Shown here: in pieces, positions 21,513 to 63,029 of the stretch
Position numbering within the stretch: the first letter of the stretch is position 1
Layout of the letters: the number at the start of each line of letters is the position of its first letter
Sequence record: LC727698.1
Length of the DNA stretch: 64,000 bases
Strand: one strand, 5' to 3'
The notes under the pieces: model-generated
The model's database searches: none
What the model saw: the letters and a program-made list of their open reading frames with translations, nothing else
What the model was told of the DNA's origin: nothing
Program-made: the position numbers and the translations under genes

Positions 21513-22269
21513 CAATATTCTAATATAATTGATTAGTATATCTAATCGATGGTTAGTGTAGTGGATGCATATGGAAATATAGAAGTATTAGTTATGCCAT
21601 CTAACATAACGGTACTAGAATTACAGGCATATACAACAGAGCTATTGTATGTAAGAAAATCTCATTGTTTATGTTTATACCTTCCTGATATAGGAAATTA
21701 TGCTTTATGGTTTTTTTAGACAGATAGGATAAAAATATAAATTGATATTATTCTGTTTAAGGAACTAGAATTAAATGGCAGGTTGCTTATTTAGACTAGA
21801 TTTGTCTATTTTTCGTGAAAATGTATATAGTATTTCTAGTTTGTCTTATACAAAATCTATATGCATTTCAATAAAAACTAAACCGACAAGCAATAGAAAA
21901 CAATTAGAAATATATGTTGTAGATAAAACAACTGATTTTTTAGTTGCATGCAAGTATTTTTAGCTTATCTATTTTGACTTGCCTTTAAAATAAATAACCA
22001 TTATATATTTGATATAACAACTATTCTAAATAGAAATAAAACCATAAATACACATAATAACGGTGTGGATTTATGGAAAACATATTTAGGATATCTATTA
22101 ATGCTAACGAAGGTATTATACGAATATCCCCTACTTACTTTTTTAATGGTGTTTTTTATTCAAAGCATTTGAATATTTTTATAATAGATCCCGACGGATA
22201 TCTAATAAGAAAAATATATACTTGTAGTACATTCTTATGATGATTTCTTTTAAATATACAAAATAACAT

Positions 22270-22298
22270 TTGACAAAAGTATAATTATTTCGTATAAT
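22270..22298 (+). promoter_or_regulatory. Consensus sigma70 promoter
   Basis: TTGACA-N17-TATAAT upstream of ORF 22330 and the Ser tRNAs. Confidence 0.85.
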
Positions 22299-22329
22299 AA
22301 GTGTATAAAATAACAAAAGAGAATTTTAA

Positions 22330-22689
22330 ATGATTTCCAAAATTCAAATTGTATACGGAATATATCTTCCTACTGCCGATGCAAAAATTATATACGAAGA
22401 CTCAGAATACGAATCTAATAAAATAAATAAAAATATTAGATTATTTGCAAATGATGATTATTTAGAAGATAAGATTTTAGAAAATAAGGAATTCGAAGAT
22501 AATCCCTATGTTCCGCACTTTTATGGTATCTTTTGTAAAGAATTCGATAATGACCAAAGTGCATACTTATATAATGTTCCTAAATCTTTTATAGATGAAT
22601 ATAATAATGTAGCTCCAGCTATTTTAGCTAGACTCGGTTATTTATATAGAGTTGCAGGAAAACAACCTTGTAGAATAATTTACGAATAG
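22330..22689 (+). CDS. Hypothetical acidic protein
   Basis: 119-aa ORF between promoter and tRNA-Ser. Confidence 0.65.
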   Translation: MISKIQIVYGIYLPTADAKIIYEDSEYESNKINKNIRLFANDDYLEDKILENKEFEDNPYVPHFYGIFCKEFDNDQSAYLYNVPKSFIDEYNNVAPAILARLGYLYRVAGKQPCRIIYE

Positions 22690-45196: not shown

Positions 45197-45604
45197 ATGC
45201 AACATACTCACATTCGTTTCTACAACGAAGAAACTCAACAGATCGATAACCGCCGTGGCGCTACTGTTGCCTGGGAAACCGCCGGCAACAAGATCCGTAT
45301 TTCCGTAGCAGCATGTTCGGAAATGGATAACTTCAACCGCAAGACCGGACGTGAACATGCTGCTAGCCGACTCGAAAGTGGCGACTACATCGAGTTTAAC
45401 GGCACCGAACTTCTTAATGCACAGATGTCTTCTGTAAGTCATGTGCAGTCTGAAGGTCTCGTTCGTGCTATGTGCTTCTTGCTAGCACAAGGCAAAGGCG
45501 ATCTATATTACCCGGCAAGCGAAGGTCAGCTTCGCAGCGAAGCCGAGTGCAATAGCTACAACGCCCTCGAGTACCTGAAACACCAGATGGGCATTCATCA
45601 GTAA
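45197..45604 (+). CDS. Hypothetical protein, host-type codon usage
   Basis: GATVAW...SVAACSEMDNFNRKTGREHAASRL; GC-rich codons. Confidence 0.8.
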   Translation: MQHTHIRFYNEETQQIDNRRGATVAWETAGNKIRISVAACSEMDNFNRKTGREHAASRLESGDYIEFNGTELLNAQMSSVSHVQSEGLVRAMCFLLAQGKGDLYYPASEGQLRSEAECNSYNALEYLKHQMGIHQ

Positions 45605-45845: not shown

Positions 45846-45874
45846 TTTACATTACATACACATATGCATATACT
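45846..45874 (+). promoter_or_regulatory. Sigma70 promoter with no ORF downstream
   Basis: TTTACA-N17-TATACT. Confidence 0.7.
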
Positions 45875-45880
45875 ATATAC

Positions 45881-46158
45881 AAGTTATGCGCTGTTGCATA
45901 CGTAAATACCTCCTATGTTGTTTAGATATGTCGATTCTGGTATAACCAGATAGACCTAAGGATGATGCTAGTGATTCCTTAGTATTGTATATTCTAGCTG
46001 AGTATAAAGAGTAAGGGGCTTTATACAAATAACAATTCCCTAGGCAAGATATACCGCTCCGTTGTGCTGACGAGCATAATTTGCCCAGATACAGAGCACG
46101 TGACTGGTCTGAGGAGCATTTATATCAGAAAGGCAGACTTATGTTTGCCTTTCTTTTT
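45881..46158 (+). ncRNA. ~280-nt sRNA candidate
   Basis: Bounded by promoter 45846-45874 and terminator AGAAAGGCAGAC-TTAT-GTTTGCCTTTCT-TTTT (46127-46158); internal hairpins; CCTCCT near the 5' end. Confidence 0.55.
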
Positions 46159-46177
46159 GAGCAGATATTCTCTTATT

Positions 46178-46261
46178 CACTTCCTTATTCATTTCTTTAT
46201 TCATCTCTATTTCGTTTGTCACTTCCTTATTCATTTCTTTATTCATCTCTATTTCATTTGT
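46178..46261. repeat. 42-bp pyrimidine-rich tandem repeat (2 copies)
   Basis: CACTTCCTTATTCATTTCTTTATTCATCTCTATTTC(G/A)TTTGT at 46178 and 46220. Confidence 0.9.
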
Positions 46262-46383
46262 TATTGCAAATAAGACTAATTCTTATTTGCGTTTGTAATT
46301 TCATTTGTTATTGCAAATAAGACTAATTCGTATTTGCATTTGCAACGAAAAAGAATATGCAAATAATAACTAATCTTATTTGC
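46251..46383. promoter_or_regulatory. Cluster of three Fur-box-like 19-bp operators (47-bp tandem duplication)
   Basis: GCA-AATAAGACT-A-ATTCTTATT-TGC at 46266-46290, a near-identical copy 47 nt later, and GCA-AATAATAAC-T-AATCTTATT-TGC at 46359-46383. Confidence 0.55.
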
Positions 46384-46546
46384 ATTTGCACTGCCTATTA
46401 TATGGATTGGTAGCATACTTGGAAATGGATAGTAAATAAGTAGTTGATTTGTTTATAAATTTTAATTCTATATCGTACTGATTGACCTTGCTATATATAG
46501 CTCGCGCGCGTATACAAGATGGTAAAAAATAATTTAAAAATATTTT

Positions 46547-46762: not shown

Positions 46763-47467
46763 ATGTCCGTACATATCACTCGTCAACGTACCGACAAACA
46801 ACACGTCCTGGCACTGGCAATCAACGGTGTGGTCATCGGCCAGACTATGGCTACCTACACCACCCCGAGCAAGCGCACCTGGTCGGCGACCGCCGAAGTC
46901 GAACTGGCAGACGGCACCGTCGTACAGTTCGAGCAGAAGGAAGTGTTCAGCGCGATCCGCATTACCCGCGAAATCGAGCAGGCGCTCGACGGCAAGGAAC
47001 TGGCGGCCAAGTACACCCCGGAACCGAAAGTTCCCGGGCAGAAGGGTCCGAAACCGCTCACCGACGAAAGCCGACTCAGCAACGCGATCGCGATCGTCAA
47101 AGCGGCCATCACCCACACCGGCTTCGACGAAGCTACCCTGGTGTTCGACGGGGTCGACAAGGCCAACTTCGAGCAGAACAGCACTTCCGTCGGCAACAAG
47201 CTGCGCCGCCTGGGCTTCGTCTTCGAACTCGGCGCCGGCAAGGCGAACAGCGGCAAGGGCTTCCTGATCAACCGCAAAGCGCAGGCCGAGGCAGAAGCTG
47301 CCGAACGCAAGGCCAAGCGCGATGCCGAGAAGAAGGAACGCGAAGAAAAAGCGGCGGCTGCCAAGCGCGAAGCTGACGAACGTAAGGCCAAGCGCGAAGC
47401 CGAGCGCGCCGAAAAGGTCGCTGAAAAGAACGCAGCGATCGCCGGGGCGGCACAGGAAAGCAAGTAA
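46763..47467 (+). CDS. Early host-codon-optimised protein with A/E/K/R-rich helical C-terminal tail
   Basis: GAGG RBS, about 60% GC, tandem promoters and terminator. Confidence 0.9.
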   Translation: MSVHITRQRTDKQHVLALAINGVVIGQTMATYTTPSKRTWSATAEVELADGTVVQFEQKEVFSAIRITREIEQALDGKELAAKYTPEPKVPGQKGPKPLTDESRLSNAIAIVKAAITHTGFDEATLVFDGVDKANFEQNSTSVGNKLRRLGFVFELGAGKANSGKGFLINRKAQAEAEAAERKAKRDAEKKEREEKAAAAKREADERKAKREAERAEKVAEKNAAIAGAAQESK

Positions 47468-53237: not shown

Positions 53238-53501
53238 ATGGAGCCTAACATGAAAAAAGAATTTGAATCGTGGGTTCGGACTCGTTCTTCGGCACCGCTT
53301 GCGTATAATGCAGTTGACGACTTGTACCTCAACCCGCATGTTCAGGCACGCTACGAGGCTTGGAAAGCCAGTCGTGTGGCACTAAGGGTAGTGTTGCCGA
53401 AATCTCACATGGCGTCGGAATACGCGCCCAAAACAAAAGTTTTCAATACAACCGATATGGAACTGGCCCTCCAAGAAGCCGGTATCGAGGTAGTGAAATG
53501 A
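53238..53501 (+). CDS. Prophage-type hypothetical protein
   Basis: EFESW...Y....VQARYEAWKASR.AL.V.LP pattern recalled from Pseudomonas/enteric prophage ORFs. Confidence 0.7.
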   Translation: MEPNMKKEFESWVRTRSSAPLAYNAVDDLYLNPHVQARYEAWKASRVALRVVLPKSHMASEYAPKTKVFNTTDMELALQEAGIEVVK

Positions 53502-53764
53502 GCAGACTGACCGCTGAGCAAGCCCGTGACATAGCGCGAGCGAAAGACGATGTCGATGCCATCCTCAACGACATCGCCAAAGCAGCCGCAGAAGGAAAGT
53601 ACGTGTACACTACCCGCGCATATGGGTTCGGCATCGGCACCTCGCGGCGCAGCGAAGCGATCCTCAAAGTGTTGCGTAGCCTCGGCTACGACTGTGCGGT
53701 GCATGCCGAAGGACGCCAGTCTGTTGACCTGTGGCTCGAAGTAAAATGGGGAGACAAGCCATGA
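53498..53764 (+). CDS. Prophage-type hypothetical protein
   Basis: GC-rich; start MSRLTAEQARD at 53498 (ATGA overlap). Confidence 0.75.
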   Translation: MSRLTAEQARDIARAKDDVDAILNDIAKAAAEGKYVYTTRAYGFGIGTSRRSEAILKVLRSLGYDCAVHAEGRQSVDLWLEVKWGDKP

Positions 53765-54492
53765 CTGACACCAACAAAATAAAAAAGCTAGCAAAACTGG
53801 CTACGCCGGGTCCGTGGTATGCAACTTGGGAGGAAGGCGATGACATTGCATGGTCGAATCTGTTTCCTGTAATCCGAGCGGACAATGGCGAAGTCGTGAT
53901 CGGTAACGAAGGCTTTTACAGCGATTTGGAGCAGGACAAGGCTAACGCCACTTTCTGTGCTGCCGCCAACCCCCGAGCCGTCCTCGACTTGCTAGACGAG
54001 ATCGACAGGCTCAGGGCAGAGCGAGACGCCGCCCTGGCCAGGGTCGTAGAGCTGGAACGCGGCAAGGTCTACGTCGAAGCCCGGCAATGCGACGAGTGCC
54101 AGCATGTCGGGATCAACGATTCCGCCACGGTCGTGGCTGCCTGCCACGAATGCGATTGGACCGGACCAGAGCCAGAAGAGGATAAGTGCCCCGGTTGCCA
54201 GAGGGAGAATTGCATGGCCGCAGCCTGCCCGCAGTGTGGCGCCCGATATGTCCTTGTTGCCAGCGAAGAGATAGCCGCCCCTGTAGCCCAGGCTCAGCAC
54301 AGCGTGCCAGAGGAATGGCACTGCATGCTAGCGAATCTTCAGTGGCACTACGAGCCGTATGACGATCACTACCACCGTGACCAGGGCTTCTATTGCCCGG
54401 TCTGTGGCGGTGAGAAGGACGAAGGGCACAAGCAGGGTTGCAACCTGGCCAAGTTGATCGCCACTGCCGACCTCAAAGAAGACAAGAAATAA
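53761..54492 (+). CDS. Ead/Ea22-like protein with CxxC zinc-ribbon modules
   Basis: LAKLATPGPW...ANATFCAAANPRAVLDLLDEIDRL (ea22/ead signature); multiple CxxC; about 60% GC. Confidence 0.75.
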   Translation: MTDTNKIKKLAKLATPGPWYATWEEGDDIAWSNLFPVIRADNGEVVIGNEGFYSDLEQDKANATFCAAANPRAVLDLLDEIDRLRAERDAALARVVELERGKVYVEARQCDECQHVGINDSATVVAACHECDWTGPEPEEDKCPGCQRENCMAAACPQCGARYVLVASEEIAAPVAQAQHSVPEEWHCMLANLQWHYEPYDDHYHRDQGFYCPVCGGEKDEGHKQGCNLAKLIATADLKEDKK

Positions 54493-57757: not shown

Positions 57758-57955
57758 ATGATTTATTTAAGTATTTGGACATTTGTATCTATAATAGTAT
57801 CGATATATCATAATATTTTAACTATAAAAATGCATAAACAGGTACTGTTGTATAAAGATTATACTTTTTATAAGGAAAGATTAGATTTTGTCTGTAATAG
57901 TTATATATTTTTCAATGTAATATTCTTCATTTTCATTGCATGCGTTACAAAATAG
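57758..57955 (+). CDS. Small membrane protein
   Basis: Two hydrophobic segments. Confidence 0.45.
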   Translation: MIYLSIWTFVSIIVSIYHNILTIKMHKQVLLYKDYTFYKERLDFVCNSYIFFNVIFFIFIACVTK

Positions 57956-57979
57956 ATCACAAAAAGTTTTAAAATTCAG

Positions 57980-58008
57980 TTTACAGCATGCATAGTTTTA
58001 CGTATTAT
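57980..58008 (+). promoter_or_regulatory. Sigma70 promoter in GA/GG-free island
   Basis: TTTACA-N17-TATTAT. Confidence 0.7.
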
Positions 58009-58054
58009 AAACACACAAAGCAATACAGCATAACGCATTGTAAGCAACACTAAA

Positions 58055-58280
58055 CGGGAGACACCGTCCCGCAAGCAGCCCGCCCGCGATGTTCGCGGGC
58101 TGCGGCAAACAGGTGTACAAGGTCTAGTAACGTGGAAGGCGCAGCATACCTTTCCCTAAATCGGAAATTGGTCAATGACGTACCTGCCCCTGGACACTGC
58201 TAGACCTTGCTGCTACAGGCGGGACAGCTACAAAGGTACACTGTATGTATCTATGCTTTACCCCGCTTTGTAGCAGGTCT
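58055..58280 (+). ncRNA. GC-rich multi-helix structured ncRNA candidate (~225 nt)
   Basis: Perfect helices 58066-72/58219-25, 58075-83/58095-103, 58118-27/58200-09, 58227-35/58266-74; no ORF; own promoter. Confidence 0.7.
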
Positions 58281-58512
58281 TAAAACGGTCTACTGGCATA
58301 TGCCTTAGTGCTAGTAGGAATCATTAACCTAAAACTATTATATGCTTCCTGGAGGTGAAGAGTATGCCGCCGCAGCATTAAATATACATTATGATGATGA
58401 TAATTATGAATGCCGAAACACCGCTTCGATTCGTTTAAAAGACAAATGTCTGAATCGAATGTTTTTGGGCAAAAAGGTCCCTTAGATGGGATTTTTTTGC
58501 GGCTGCTAACTA

Positions 58513-58537
58513 GCAAACGCGAATTAATCTTATTTGC
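58513..58537. promoter_or_regulatory. Fur-box-like operator just upstream of promoter TTGACT-N17-TACATT (58557-58585)
   Basis: GCA-AACGCGAAT-T-AATCTTATT-TGC. Confidence 0.5.
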
Positions 58538-58614
58538 AATTTAAGAAAAATACCAGTTGACTGTAGCTTGTTAACATAGTACATTTAACTCATAAATCCG
58601 CAGGAGTAGCAGTT

Positions 58615-59054: not shown

Positions 59055-59287
59055 GCGTATACTGTAATTGCATAGCATGCGGTGGAGATGATCCGTATGC
59101 TGTATGTGAAAATGTGTTAATGGATATCCAAAAGCACAAATATAATACTGGTCCCAGCTGGGGGCTGGTAGTTGCGGCAGTATTGTGTTTAGTAGGAATG
59201 GGATTAGCAGGTAACGCAGCACTATCTGATAAAAAAGAAACACCGTGCGAAACTACACAACAAAAACAAGAGGTGTATAATGAGTAA
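59051..59287 (+). CDS. Small Cys-rich membrane protein
   Basis: CNCIAC, C-terminal TM helix. Confidence 0.6.
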   Translation: MSVYCNCIACGGDDPYAVCENVLMDIQKHKYNTGPSWGLVVAAVLCLVGMGLAGNAALSDKKETPCETTQQKQEVYNE

Positions 59288-59486
59288 CAAAACAACAGAC
59301 ATGCTGGTAGATGAATTTCTGTGCGAGCGTGCATCTTTTTCTCCGTTTAGCGAAGGTGTTCATGCAGCTAAACTAGGGCAGAAATATACAGACTGCCCGT
59401 ATACCAAAAATGAGCCGTATGAACGTAACGAATGGATTCGAGGACATCAAATGTGGCATGATTATTCTGTTCAACAATACAAATAA
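59280..59486 (+). CDS. Rmf/CrpP-fold small protein
   Basis: FSEGVHAAKLG....DCPY......RNEWIRGH parallels RMF RGYQAGIAG....CPY...RSQWLGGW. Confidence 0.6.
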   Translation: MSNKTTDMLVDEFLCERASFSPFSEGVHAAKLGQKYTDCPYTKNEPYERNEWIRGHQMWHDYSVQQYK

Positions 59487-61025: not shown

Positions 61026-61060
61026 ACATTCAAAAGGAAAGGACCTTTCCTTTTGAATGT
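61026..61060. terminator. Palindromic terminator
   Basis: 17-bp arms ACATTCAAAAGGAAAGG-A-CCTTTCCTTTTGAATGT. Confidence 0.85.
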
Positions 61061-62367: not shown

Positions 62368-62595
62368 ATGGGCGGTCTTGCTAATATAATTGCATGCATA
62401 GCTTCTATTGTTGCAATTGTTACTGGAAATATCTGGTATTTTATTGCACTATTGCTATGCACAGCATTTATGTCTCCCGAACGAAAAGGATCATTAATTG
62501 ATGTATTTTCGTTCATTGTAGGGATTGTTGCTATATTTAACGGAGACATTGCATGGGGCATAGTGTTCATAGCATTAGTGACAATAGTTAAATAG
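62368..62595 (+). CDS. Small membrane protein with internal duplication
   Basis: GGAGG RBS; ASIVAIVTGNIWYFIALLL repeated as VGIVAIFNGDIAWGIVFI. Confidence 0.7.
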   Translation: MGGLANIIACIASIVAIVTGNIWYFIALLLCTAFMSPERKGSLIDVFSFIVGIVAIFNGDIAWGIVFIALVTIVK

Positions 62596-62624
62596 AAAGG
62601 AAGGGGTTTAACCCCTTCCTTTCT
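62594..62624. terminator. Palindromic terminator
   Basis: AGAAAGGAAGGGGTT-T-AACCCCTTCCTTTCT. Confidence 0.85.
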
Positions 62625-63029
62625 TTGCAGGTGTTAAATGTCATCGATTTTTTATCTTAGCGAATTAACAGAATACATAGAAATTTTAAACAATAAAAGA
62701 ATAAAAATAAGTTCCAAGACATATTCTATAGGATATGTATCACTAGAAACACCTCGGCGCACATTTTACTGGACACTTTTTGGATGAAATACAATAATCA
62801 TATCTAAATAGCTACCTACCTTTATATCAAAAACCATTCTATGAAATATATTTCCTAAATCATATTACAAAAGTTATATTTGAATTTTGGATTCTTATCT
62901 CAACCTTGCATTGCAATATAAAATGCGAATATGAGTGTGCTATATATATTTGCATACGCATGTACATATGCATAAGCGTATTGAGAAAAACAATTTATTT
63001 TATTCTATACGATTATCTTTAATACCTAT

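Follow-up and report, generated by a model that had tools for sequence, protein, structure and literature searches.

The window analyzed here, a stretch of 64,000 nucleotides from sequence record LC727698.1, is DNA of a Wroclawvirus (family Arenbergviridae), a PA5oct-like jumbo phage of Pseudomonas aeruginosa, and the segment of interest lies at positions 58055-58280. A sequence-only reading had described this segment as a GC-rich island free of open reading frames (ORFs) inside AT-rich DNA, and the description is borne out: GC content is 62% at 58050-58149 and 48-52% from there to 58300, against 21-29% in the 300 nt upstream, and no ORF of more than 41 codons overlaps 58050-58300 on either strand. 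A megablast search with 57900-58600 matched 11 phage records, all of them P. aeruginosa Wroclawvirus jumbo phages; phage 30-3 is 100% identical, seven further isolates are at least 99% identical, and PA5oct, represented by two records, is 94.8% identical. The window also carries 12 tRNAs, the same set as that listed for PA5oct (PMC7318152), all of them outside the segment. Other GC-rich islands, at 45197-45604 (135 aa), 46763-47467 (234 aa), and 53238-54492 (87-253 aa), with 50-64% GC, are ordinary ORFs that look horizontally acquired.

In PA5oct the locus is known to be transcribed. Lood et al. 2020 (PMC7318152) described four transcribed regions of this phage that are devoid of ORFs, and record MK797984 annotates one of them, at 21951-22401 (+), as [quoted passage not shown]. 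With shared end anchors, these bounds map to 58027-58481 of the window. Based on strand-specific RNA-seq, ncRNA002 is among the most abundant transcripts of PA5oct, contributing 4.65%, 5.04%, and 1.23% of the phage reads at 5, 15, and 25 min, respectively; it was placed within the long terminal repeat and found to have no similarity to any other GenBank entry (PMC7318152). The same paper has no nucleotide-resolution mapping of its boundaries, and no structure or function is given there, in its 2018 preprint, or in the later papers searched. The unit in the window is 92.5% identical to that of PA5oct and shares its flanking genes; across the genus, the unit is orthologous over its full length and in the same genomic context, at 92.5-100% identity. 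Its presence as an abundant + strand RNA has been observed for the PA5oct orthologue only, and the absence of an ORF is an observation on the window. We regard it as virtually certain that the flagged segment belongs to the orthologue of ncRNA002, a stand-alone non-coding RNA gene of which it forms the GC-rich 5' domain. The feature has been known as a transcript since 2020. That its orthologue is an abundant RNA-seq transcript supports the proposal, made from the letters of the window, of a non-coding, independently promoted, structured RNA.

The best sigma-70-like site of the region, TTTACA-17-TATTAT at 57980-58008 (+), is the promoter that had been proposed to lie upstream of the segment. 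Ten of its 12 positions match, its predicted start is near 58015, and it is unchanged in all 10 phage genomes. An A/T-rich tract at 57956-57979 (+), directly 5' of the -35 hexamer, resembles an UP element and may act as one. PA5oct requires the host RNA polymerase, and the promoters mapped in this phage follow the pattern TTGAC / TATAATA (PMC7318152). The published RNA-seq 5' boundary of ncRNA002 corresponds to about 58027 in the window, and the A/C-rich leader at 58015-58054 (+) is predicted to be weakly structured. At the other end, a hairpin of 8 + 4 bp (H7) followed by a run of five Ts forms a first terminator-like element at 58425-58466 (+), and a hairpin with a run of seven Ts forms a second one at 58469-58500 (+), inside which the published 3' boundary falls. 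A consensus terminator scan listed neither; the role of terminator is assigned to both from the shape of the hairpins and from the published 3' boundary. The whole predicted transcription unit therefore spans 58015-58500 (+), or 486 nt. The span 58055-58280 of the sequence-only reading is real, but it is only the front half of an RNA that is about twice as long and ends at about 58500.

The four perfect helices quoted in that reading are all present in the sequence of the + strand: an outer helix, P1, of GTCCCGC/GCGGGAC (58066-58072 / 58219-58225); P2, GCAGCCCGC/GCGGGCTGC (58075-58083 / 58095-58103); P3, CAAGGTCTAG/CTAGACCTTG (58118-58127 / 58200-58209); and a last helix, GCTACAAAG/CTTTGTAGC (58227-58235 / 58266-58274). 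The nested topology drawn from them holds in part. P2 and P3 are robust. P2 is a hairpin with a 9-bp GC stem at 58075-58103 (+) and a pair probability of about 0.65-0.69. P3 is an irregular hairpin of 92 nt and 33 pairs at 58118-58209 (+), with a pair probability of about 1.0, a predicted closing stem of 12 bp, and an apical loop of 7 nt at 58156-58162. P1 and the last hairpin, on the other hand, have pairing probabilities near zero because an alternative 14-bp helix, 58210-58223 with 58261-58276, takes the same strands; the fold that contains it is more stable by about 4.6-6.9 kcal/mol. In the minimum-energy fold this helix belongs to a P4 module of 24 pairs at 58210-58276 (+). The P4 module and the quoted pair of P1 and last hairpin are mutually exclusive arrangements. 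The quoted arrangement could form first during transcription, and thus a switch is conceivable. Overall, the 5' half is predicted to consist of three helical modules, namely P2, P3, and the P4 module.

The 3' half is predicted to be built differently, as four hairpins along AU-rich single-stranded linkers. The first of them, H5, is a hairpin of 10 bp with an 8-nt loop at 58290-58317 (+). The second, H6, at 58342-58378 (+), is predicted to pair a Shine-Dalgarno-like GGAGGTGA (8 nt, 58351-58358) with the first codons of a 5-codon mini-ORF, MPPQH, at 58364-58381 (+), the AUG of which starts at 58364, 5 nt after the Shine-Dalgarno match. The layout of a minigene, that is, a strong ribosome-binding site, an AUG, 2-6 codons, and a stop, is thus found at 58351-58381, and it is invariant except for the identity of the stop. 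An AU-rich linker follows at 58380-58410 (+), and the two terminator-like hairpins complete the half. A long-range pairing between P2 and the mini-ORF hairpin, considered as a basis for their co-variation, was rejected because the complementarity is no better than that of shuffles; shuffled P2 sequences pair equally well or better.

How unusual is this fold? The 486-nt unit has a predicted energy of -166.7 kcal/mol, with a z-score of -5.3 against dinucleotide shuffles, and none of 100 shuffles is as stable. Against dinucleotide shuffles, the z-score is -3.9 for 58040-58300 (+) and -4.2 for the core, 58055-58290 (+), where 1 of 400 shuffles is as stable. On the - strand the fold of the core is just as good (z -4.5), whereas the 3' half prefers the + strand (z -4.0 vs -2.3 on the - strand). 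The background is itself shifted: 198 overlapping windows of 240 nt across 40-63.7 kb have a mean z of -1.3 with a standard deviation of 1.67, and the locus ranks 8th among them. The locus is therefore less unusual than the raw z-score suggests, and its z is not exceptional for this genome. Two more extreme background windows that were folded each contain a long near-perfect terminator hairpin, and two others of comparable z are GC-rich coding windows at 45280 and 45520. The hairpins in the two folded windows, which are the most extreme of the scan, at 61026-61060 and about 62590-62625, have 16 and 14 predicted pairs, and each is terminator-like, followed by a T-run or a T-rich tract.

Comparison among alleles adds a second line of evidence. 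The set comprises 10 distinct phage genomes plus 7 contigs from metagenomes or the SRA, the latter gathered through exact look-up of two flanking small proteins; together they represent 15 distinct alleles, five of them new from the contigs. ncRNA002 is present in all 10 genomes and all 7 contigs, and identity is about 91% or higher for every allele that the contigs added. The allele in the window is the commoner one. The PA5oct-type allele, which also occurs in one SRA contig, differs by wholesale replacement of the P2 sequence and of the AU-rich linker, the latter with a 1-nt length difference, and its P2 hairpin is weaker (-14.6 vs -21.0 kcal/mol). Outside these two patches there are 24 variable sites, of which 8 are paired, as compared with 47% of bases paired. 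Five of the eight keep their pair by a one-sided G-C/G-U/A-U change that is workable in + strand RNA only, and three break it; neither proportion is statistically convincing. In P3, 31 of the 33 pairs are invariant; of the other two, one becomes G-U instead of G-C and one is disrupted in just one metagenome contig. In P4, G58218A, found in five alleles, turns a G-U into an A-U pair. Variation in H5 is confined to the loop, which is 10 nt long in three metagenome alleles; in H7, C58456T of PA5oct gives a G-U pair; and the second terminator hairpin has two one-sided pair-keeping changes, in phage 30-2 and in one SRA contig.

H6 is invariant in all alleles, while both of its flanks vary. The mini-ORF is intact in all 15 alleles; its stop, TAA in the window and TGA in PA5oct, is the exact point at which the two sequences begin to diverge. 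No double-sided compensatory change was found among the pairs examined in the 15 alleles. Conservation of the locus does not exceed that of the neighboring coding genes. Taken together, the variation appears compatible with a + strand RNA fold and is not proof of it. As a separate observation, a contig of SRR8668314 has 81 nt less than the window between the 62-aa and 55-aa genes; the difference is in the small-ORF region upstream of the promoter (upstream of 57900), outside the RNA.

The view that the RNA belongs to no recognized family is upheld by a check against Rfam, which returned no family for the segment either at gathering thresholds or at E<=10. This negative takes in 6S RNA, ribozymes, introns, RNase P, riboswitches, Rsm/Csr RNAs, CRISPR repeats, and tmRNA. 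A scan for tRNA and tmRNA detected none at the segment, and a tRNA, tmRNA, or tRNA-like element was accordingly rejected; no tandem repeats were found at ncRNA002. The sequence-only reading had allowed that the segment might instead be a fragment of an acquired coding gene. No such fragment was found: Pfam and PHROGs gave no match to nine stop-free frames, tblastn of the segment matched only the same phages, and the idea of a coding remnant was dropped for want of residual coding similarity in any frame. Longer frames in the 3' half were also set aside. A 47-codon ORF at 58342 is judged spurious because its frame changes in PA5oct, as are a 44-codon ORF at 58410 (+) and, because the published transcript is of the + strand, small CDSs that automatic annotation put on the - strand of Ettore, Paride, and PAC2. 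Small hypothetical CDSs lie within the RNA gene in some deposited genomes (Ettore, Paride, PAC2, Cassandra, and Deifobo), at 58050-58175 (-), 58280-58378 (-), and 58410-58544 (+), and these are probable gene-caller artefacts.

Searches for homologues were equally negative beyond the genus. A covariance model of 58112-58280 found no paralogue elsewhere in the window or in the other three ncRNA loci of PA5oct. Low-stringency blastn against 50,697 phage records gave, outside the genus, only 46-nt chance matches in mycobacteriophage tail genes. In IMG/VR, neither a 20-mer nor two neighboring proteins had a match, and five contigs retrieved with a two-arm pattern were rejected as an unrelated coding region. 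A plasmid search returned noise only; JGI metagenomes and GTDB genomes, each probed with two patterns, had no match; and HMMER with the upstream 96-aa protein against 1.84 billion representatives found only the protein itself and unrelated repeat proteins. Judged by these sequence searches, ncRNA002 is an orphan RNA of one genus, Wroclawvirus, and hence its fold has no comparative support from more distant relatives.

Two features downstream of the RNA deserve mention in their own right. About 800 nt 3' of it, a 68-aa ORF at 59280-59486 (+) has a weak match to ribosome modulation factor (Pfam PF04957, E 2.5e-5, 24.7 bits, under the cut-off of 27.9), and the same weak flag is on all metagenome copies of the ORF; its presence is intriguing beside an RNA with a very strong ribosome-binding site. 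The other, noted at 58511-58540 and also at 46371, 52509, 55217, and 63472, is a 14-nt motif, TAATCTTATTTGCA, with exactly four perfect copies on the + strand and, at up to 2 mismatches, 12 matches where 3.1 are expected. The motif falls within an intergenic inverted repeat, roughly 30 nt in all, made up of GCAAA, a stretch of about 15 nt, and TTTGC. One of the copies is separated by 25 nt from the ncRNA002 terminator on its 5' side and by 20 nt from the promoter-like site that follows, and on account of this placement the repeat may be an operator or a phage-specific promoter element.

How ncRNA002 acts can be approached from the features above. In the mechanism that we propose, host sigma-70 RNA polymerase would initiate at TTTACA-17-TATTAT, transcribe about 470-485 nt of the + strand, and stop at the two tandem hairpin and T-run terminators. 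The compact fold would make the RNA long-lived, so that it accumulates early and persists. In its 3' half, H6 would conceal a very strong ribosome-binding site together with the 5-codon mini-ORF. The RNA would then work in trans and, as a decoy or scaffold, keep a host RNA-binding component occupied. As a guess, this component may be the 30S subunit, reached through the Shine-Dalgarno site, or Hfq or RNase E, reached through the AU-rich linkers and the 3' U-tail; no result indicates a partner protein, target, or ligand. The proposal is based on the early, high, and persistent abundance of the transcript, on its own strong promoter and double terminator, and on the combination of a compact GC-rich domain with a 3' half whose layout is that of a protein- or ribosome-binding RNA. 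We hold the role of long-lived trans-acting decoy or scaffold only tentatively, as possible but doubtful. The explanation as a whole, in which this role is blended with the far firmer identity of the RNA, comes a little short of an even chance. As for the sequence-only reading, the structured stand-alone non-coding RNA at its center stands, and the specific functions that it offered are not supported; of these functions, a protein sponge is possible.

Other readings of the locus have to be weighed against the decoy or scaffold. The RNA may be an inert by-product of transcription, a foreign or decayed GC-rich patch caught between a strong early promoter and terminators, the abundance of which would be due only to the resistance of GC-rich hairpins to decay. 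Several observations fit such a patch: the other GC-rich islands of this genome of about 30% GC are acquired-looking coding genes, P2 and the AU linker are replaced patchwise with no excess conservation, the 15 alleles lack covariation, the core folds as well on the - strand, and z-scores at 45280 and 45520 are similar. A decayed gene, however, should be set against the lack of residual coding similarity in any frame and of any DNA match in plasmids, GTDB genomes, IMG/VR, and JGI metagenomes. The unit also has a strong promoter and two terminators to itself, no known Wroclawvirus genome or metagenome contig lacks it, and H6 with its ribosome-binding site is invariant between two variable flanks. 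We consider an inert by-product unlikely. A leader acting in cis, either by attenuation of the downstream early genes (58615 onward) at the two terminators or by a put-type modification of the polymerase, is less probable again. The position directly 3' of an early promoter and 5' of a string of genes on the same strand, the tandem terminators, and the switch-like exclusion between P1 plus the last hairpin and the P4 module would all suit a leader. Yet the alternative helices involve neither terminator, no known riboswitch or leader family matches, and what follows the domain is instead a 5-codon ORF and two terminators. The downstream genes have a promoter-like site of their own at 58557-58585, and the PA5oct authors treated ncRNA002 as a separate, highly covered feature that ends before the next gene (PMC7318152).

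The mini-ORF suggests that the RNA might work as a minigene, in which MPPQH is translated and acts by peptidyl-tRNA drop-off or ribosome capture, as the bar minigenes of lambda do, or through the pentapeptide product. An 8-nt Shine-Dalgarno match 5 nt before the AUG, the preservation of ORF and stop in every allele with TAA and TGA exchanged exactly where divergence starts, and the weak ribosome-modulation-factor-like gene 800 nt downstream speak for it. But in the predicted H6 the ribosome-binding site pairs with codons of the mini-ORF itself, the conservation boundary fits the end of H6 equally well, and the GC-rich 5' domain is left unexplained; this reading is improbable. We place in the same low range an anti-defence RNA, the fold of which would mimic or sequester a component of host immunity such as an RNA-guided nuclease, a toxin, or a signaling nucleotide. 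Early abundant expression in PA5oct, a setting among small accessory genes of the early region within the terminal repeat, and a lineage-restricted, patchwise variable sequence would be expected of it, but nothing speaks positively in its favor. There are no tandem repeats of the type III antitoxin kind and no recognizable neighboring toxin, which led to rejection of a ToxI-like RNA; no Rfam CRISPR-repeat or antitoxin family matches, and no adjacent partner gene has a recognizable domain. A 6S-like decoy of RNA polymerase or a self-cleaving ribozyme, both suggested in the sequence-only reading, is the least credible. It is true that the phage relies on the host polymerase and that the RNA is structured and abundant. 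Nevertheless, no 6S, ribozyme, intron, or RNase P model matches at E<=10, the predicted fold is a set of branched hairpins with a largest unpaired stretch of 9 nt and not a rod with a large central bubble, and the annotated transcript is continuous.

Beyond the choice among these functions, ncRNA002 may be the founding member of a new class of structured phage RNAs. It is an orphan with abundant expression and a transcription unit of its own, found in all known genomes of the genus, and it is from these properties that the notion is drawn. Its GC-rich, three-module 5' domain would then bind a host or phage protein, or the ribosome, specifically and with high affinity, and its early use would lie in the takeover of translation or RNA turnover, or in the blunting of a defence system. 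This reading as a whole is rather unlikely.

About one in twenty early phage reads of PA5oct come from this RNA, and phages of the PA5oct type are of practical interest: they are among the candidates for use in phage therapy, and one of them, Paride, kills P. aeruginosa in its dormant state. New beyond the annotation of 2020 are the promoter, the module boundaries, the competing helices, the hidden ribosome-binding site, and the double terminator, as well as the list of excluded families, the restriction to one genus, and a variation too low for covariation. The last two make function a matter for probing and partner identification rather than for comparative genomics. The case also indicates that, in a phage genome rich in AT, a scan for GC islands can find a true RNA gene with the sequence as its only input.

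The closest counterpart of the locus is ncRNA002 of PA5oct itself, which has the same neighbors, promoter, helices, mini-ORF hairpin, and terminators. The other three PA5oct RNAs, ncRNA001, ncRNA003, and ncRNA004, are likewise ORF-free transcripts defined by RNA-seq, but they have no sequence or covariance-model similarity to ncRNA002, which alone among the four has a GC-rich domain (63% maximum). ncRNA001 also follows a TTTACA-17-TATnnT site and is as abundant as ncRNA002. Its orthologue in the window, at 45901-46136 (+), is 99% identical to that of PA5oct, with a promoter-like TTTACA-17-TATACT at 45846-45874; it is AT-rich, unrelated to ncRNA002, and not unusual in fold (z -0.9), and it is followed by direct and inverted repeats at 46160-46384. 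Among other phages, ncRNA1/2 of PAK_P3 and the candidates of phiKZ are abundant, genus-restricted non-coding RNAs found by transcriptomics, of unknown function, and many such RNAs are derived from UTRs, either processed from a 3' UTR or left by premature termination within a 5' UTR (PMC10914365). In contrast to the RNAs of PAK_P3 and phiKZ, ncRNA002 has its own promoter and terminators, is longer, and is GC-rich. It resembles 6S RNA (RF00013) as an abundant, structured RNA in a system that depends on the sigma-70 holoenzyme, but it has no model match, is branched, has no central bubble, and is about 2.5 times longer. With the Pseudomonas sponge RNAs RsmY/RsmZ and CrcZ it shares high abundance and a 3' half of hairpins on linkers, although it has no Rfam match; a sponge of the Rsm/Csr type was rejected, as no family model matches and GGA motifs are not enriched, the eight GGA triplets being about the chance number and, read against the predicted fold, mostly in or across stems. 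The bar minigene transcripts of lambda are early phage transcripts in which a strong ribosome-binding site and an AUG open a very short ORF. In ncRNA002 the site is predicted to be sequestered within a 480-nt structured RNA and its translation is putative, but the same three elements are present there as well.
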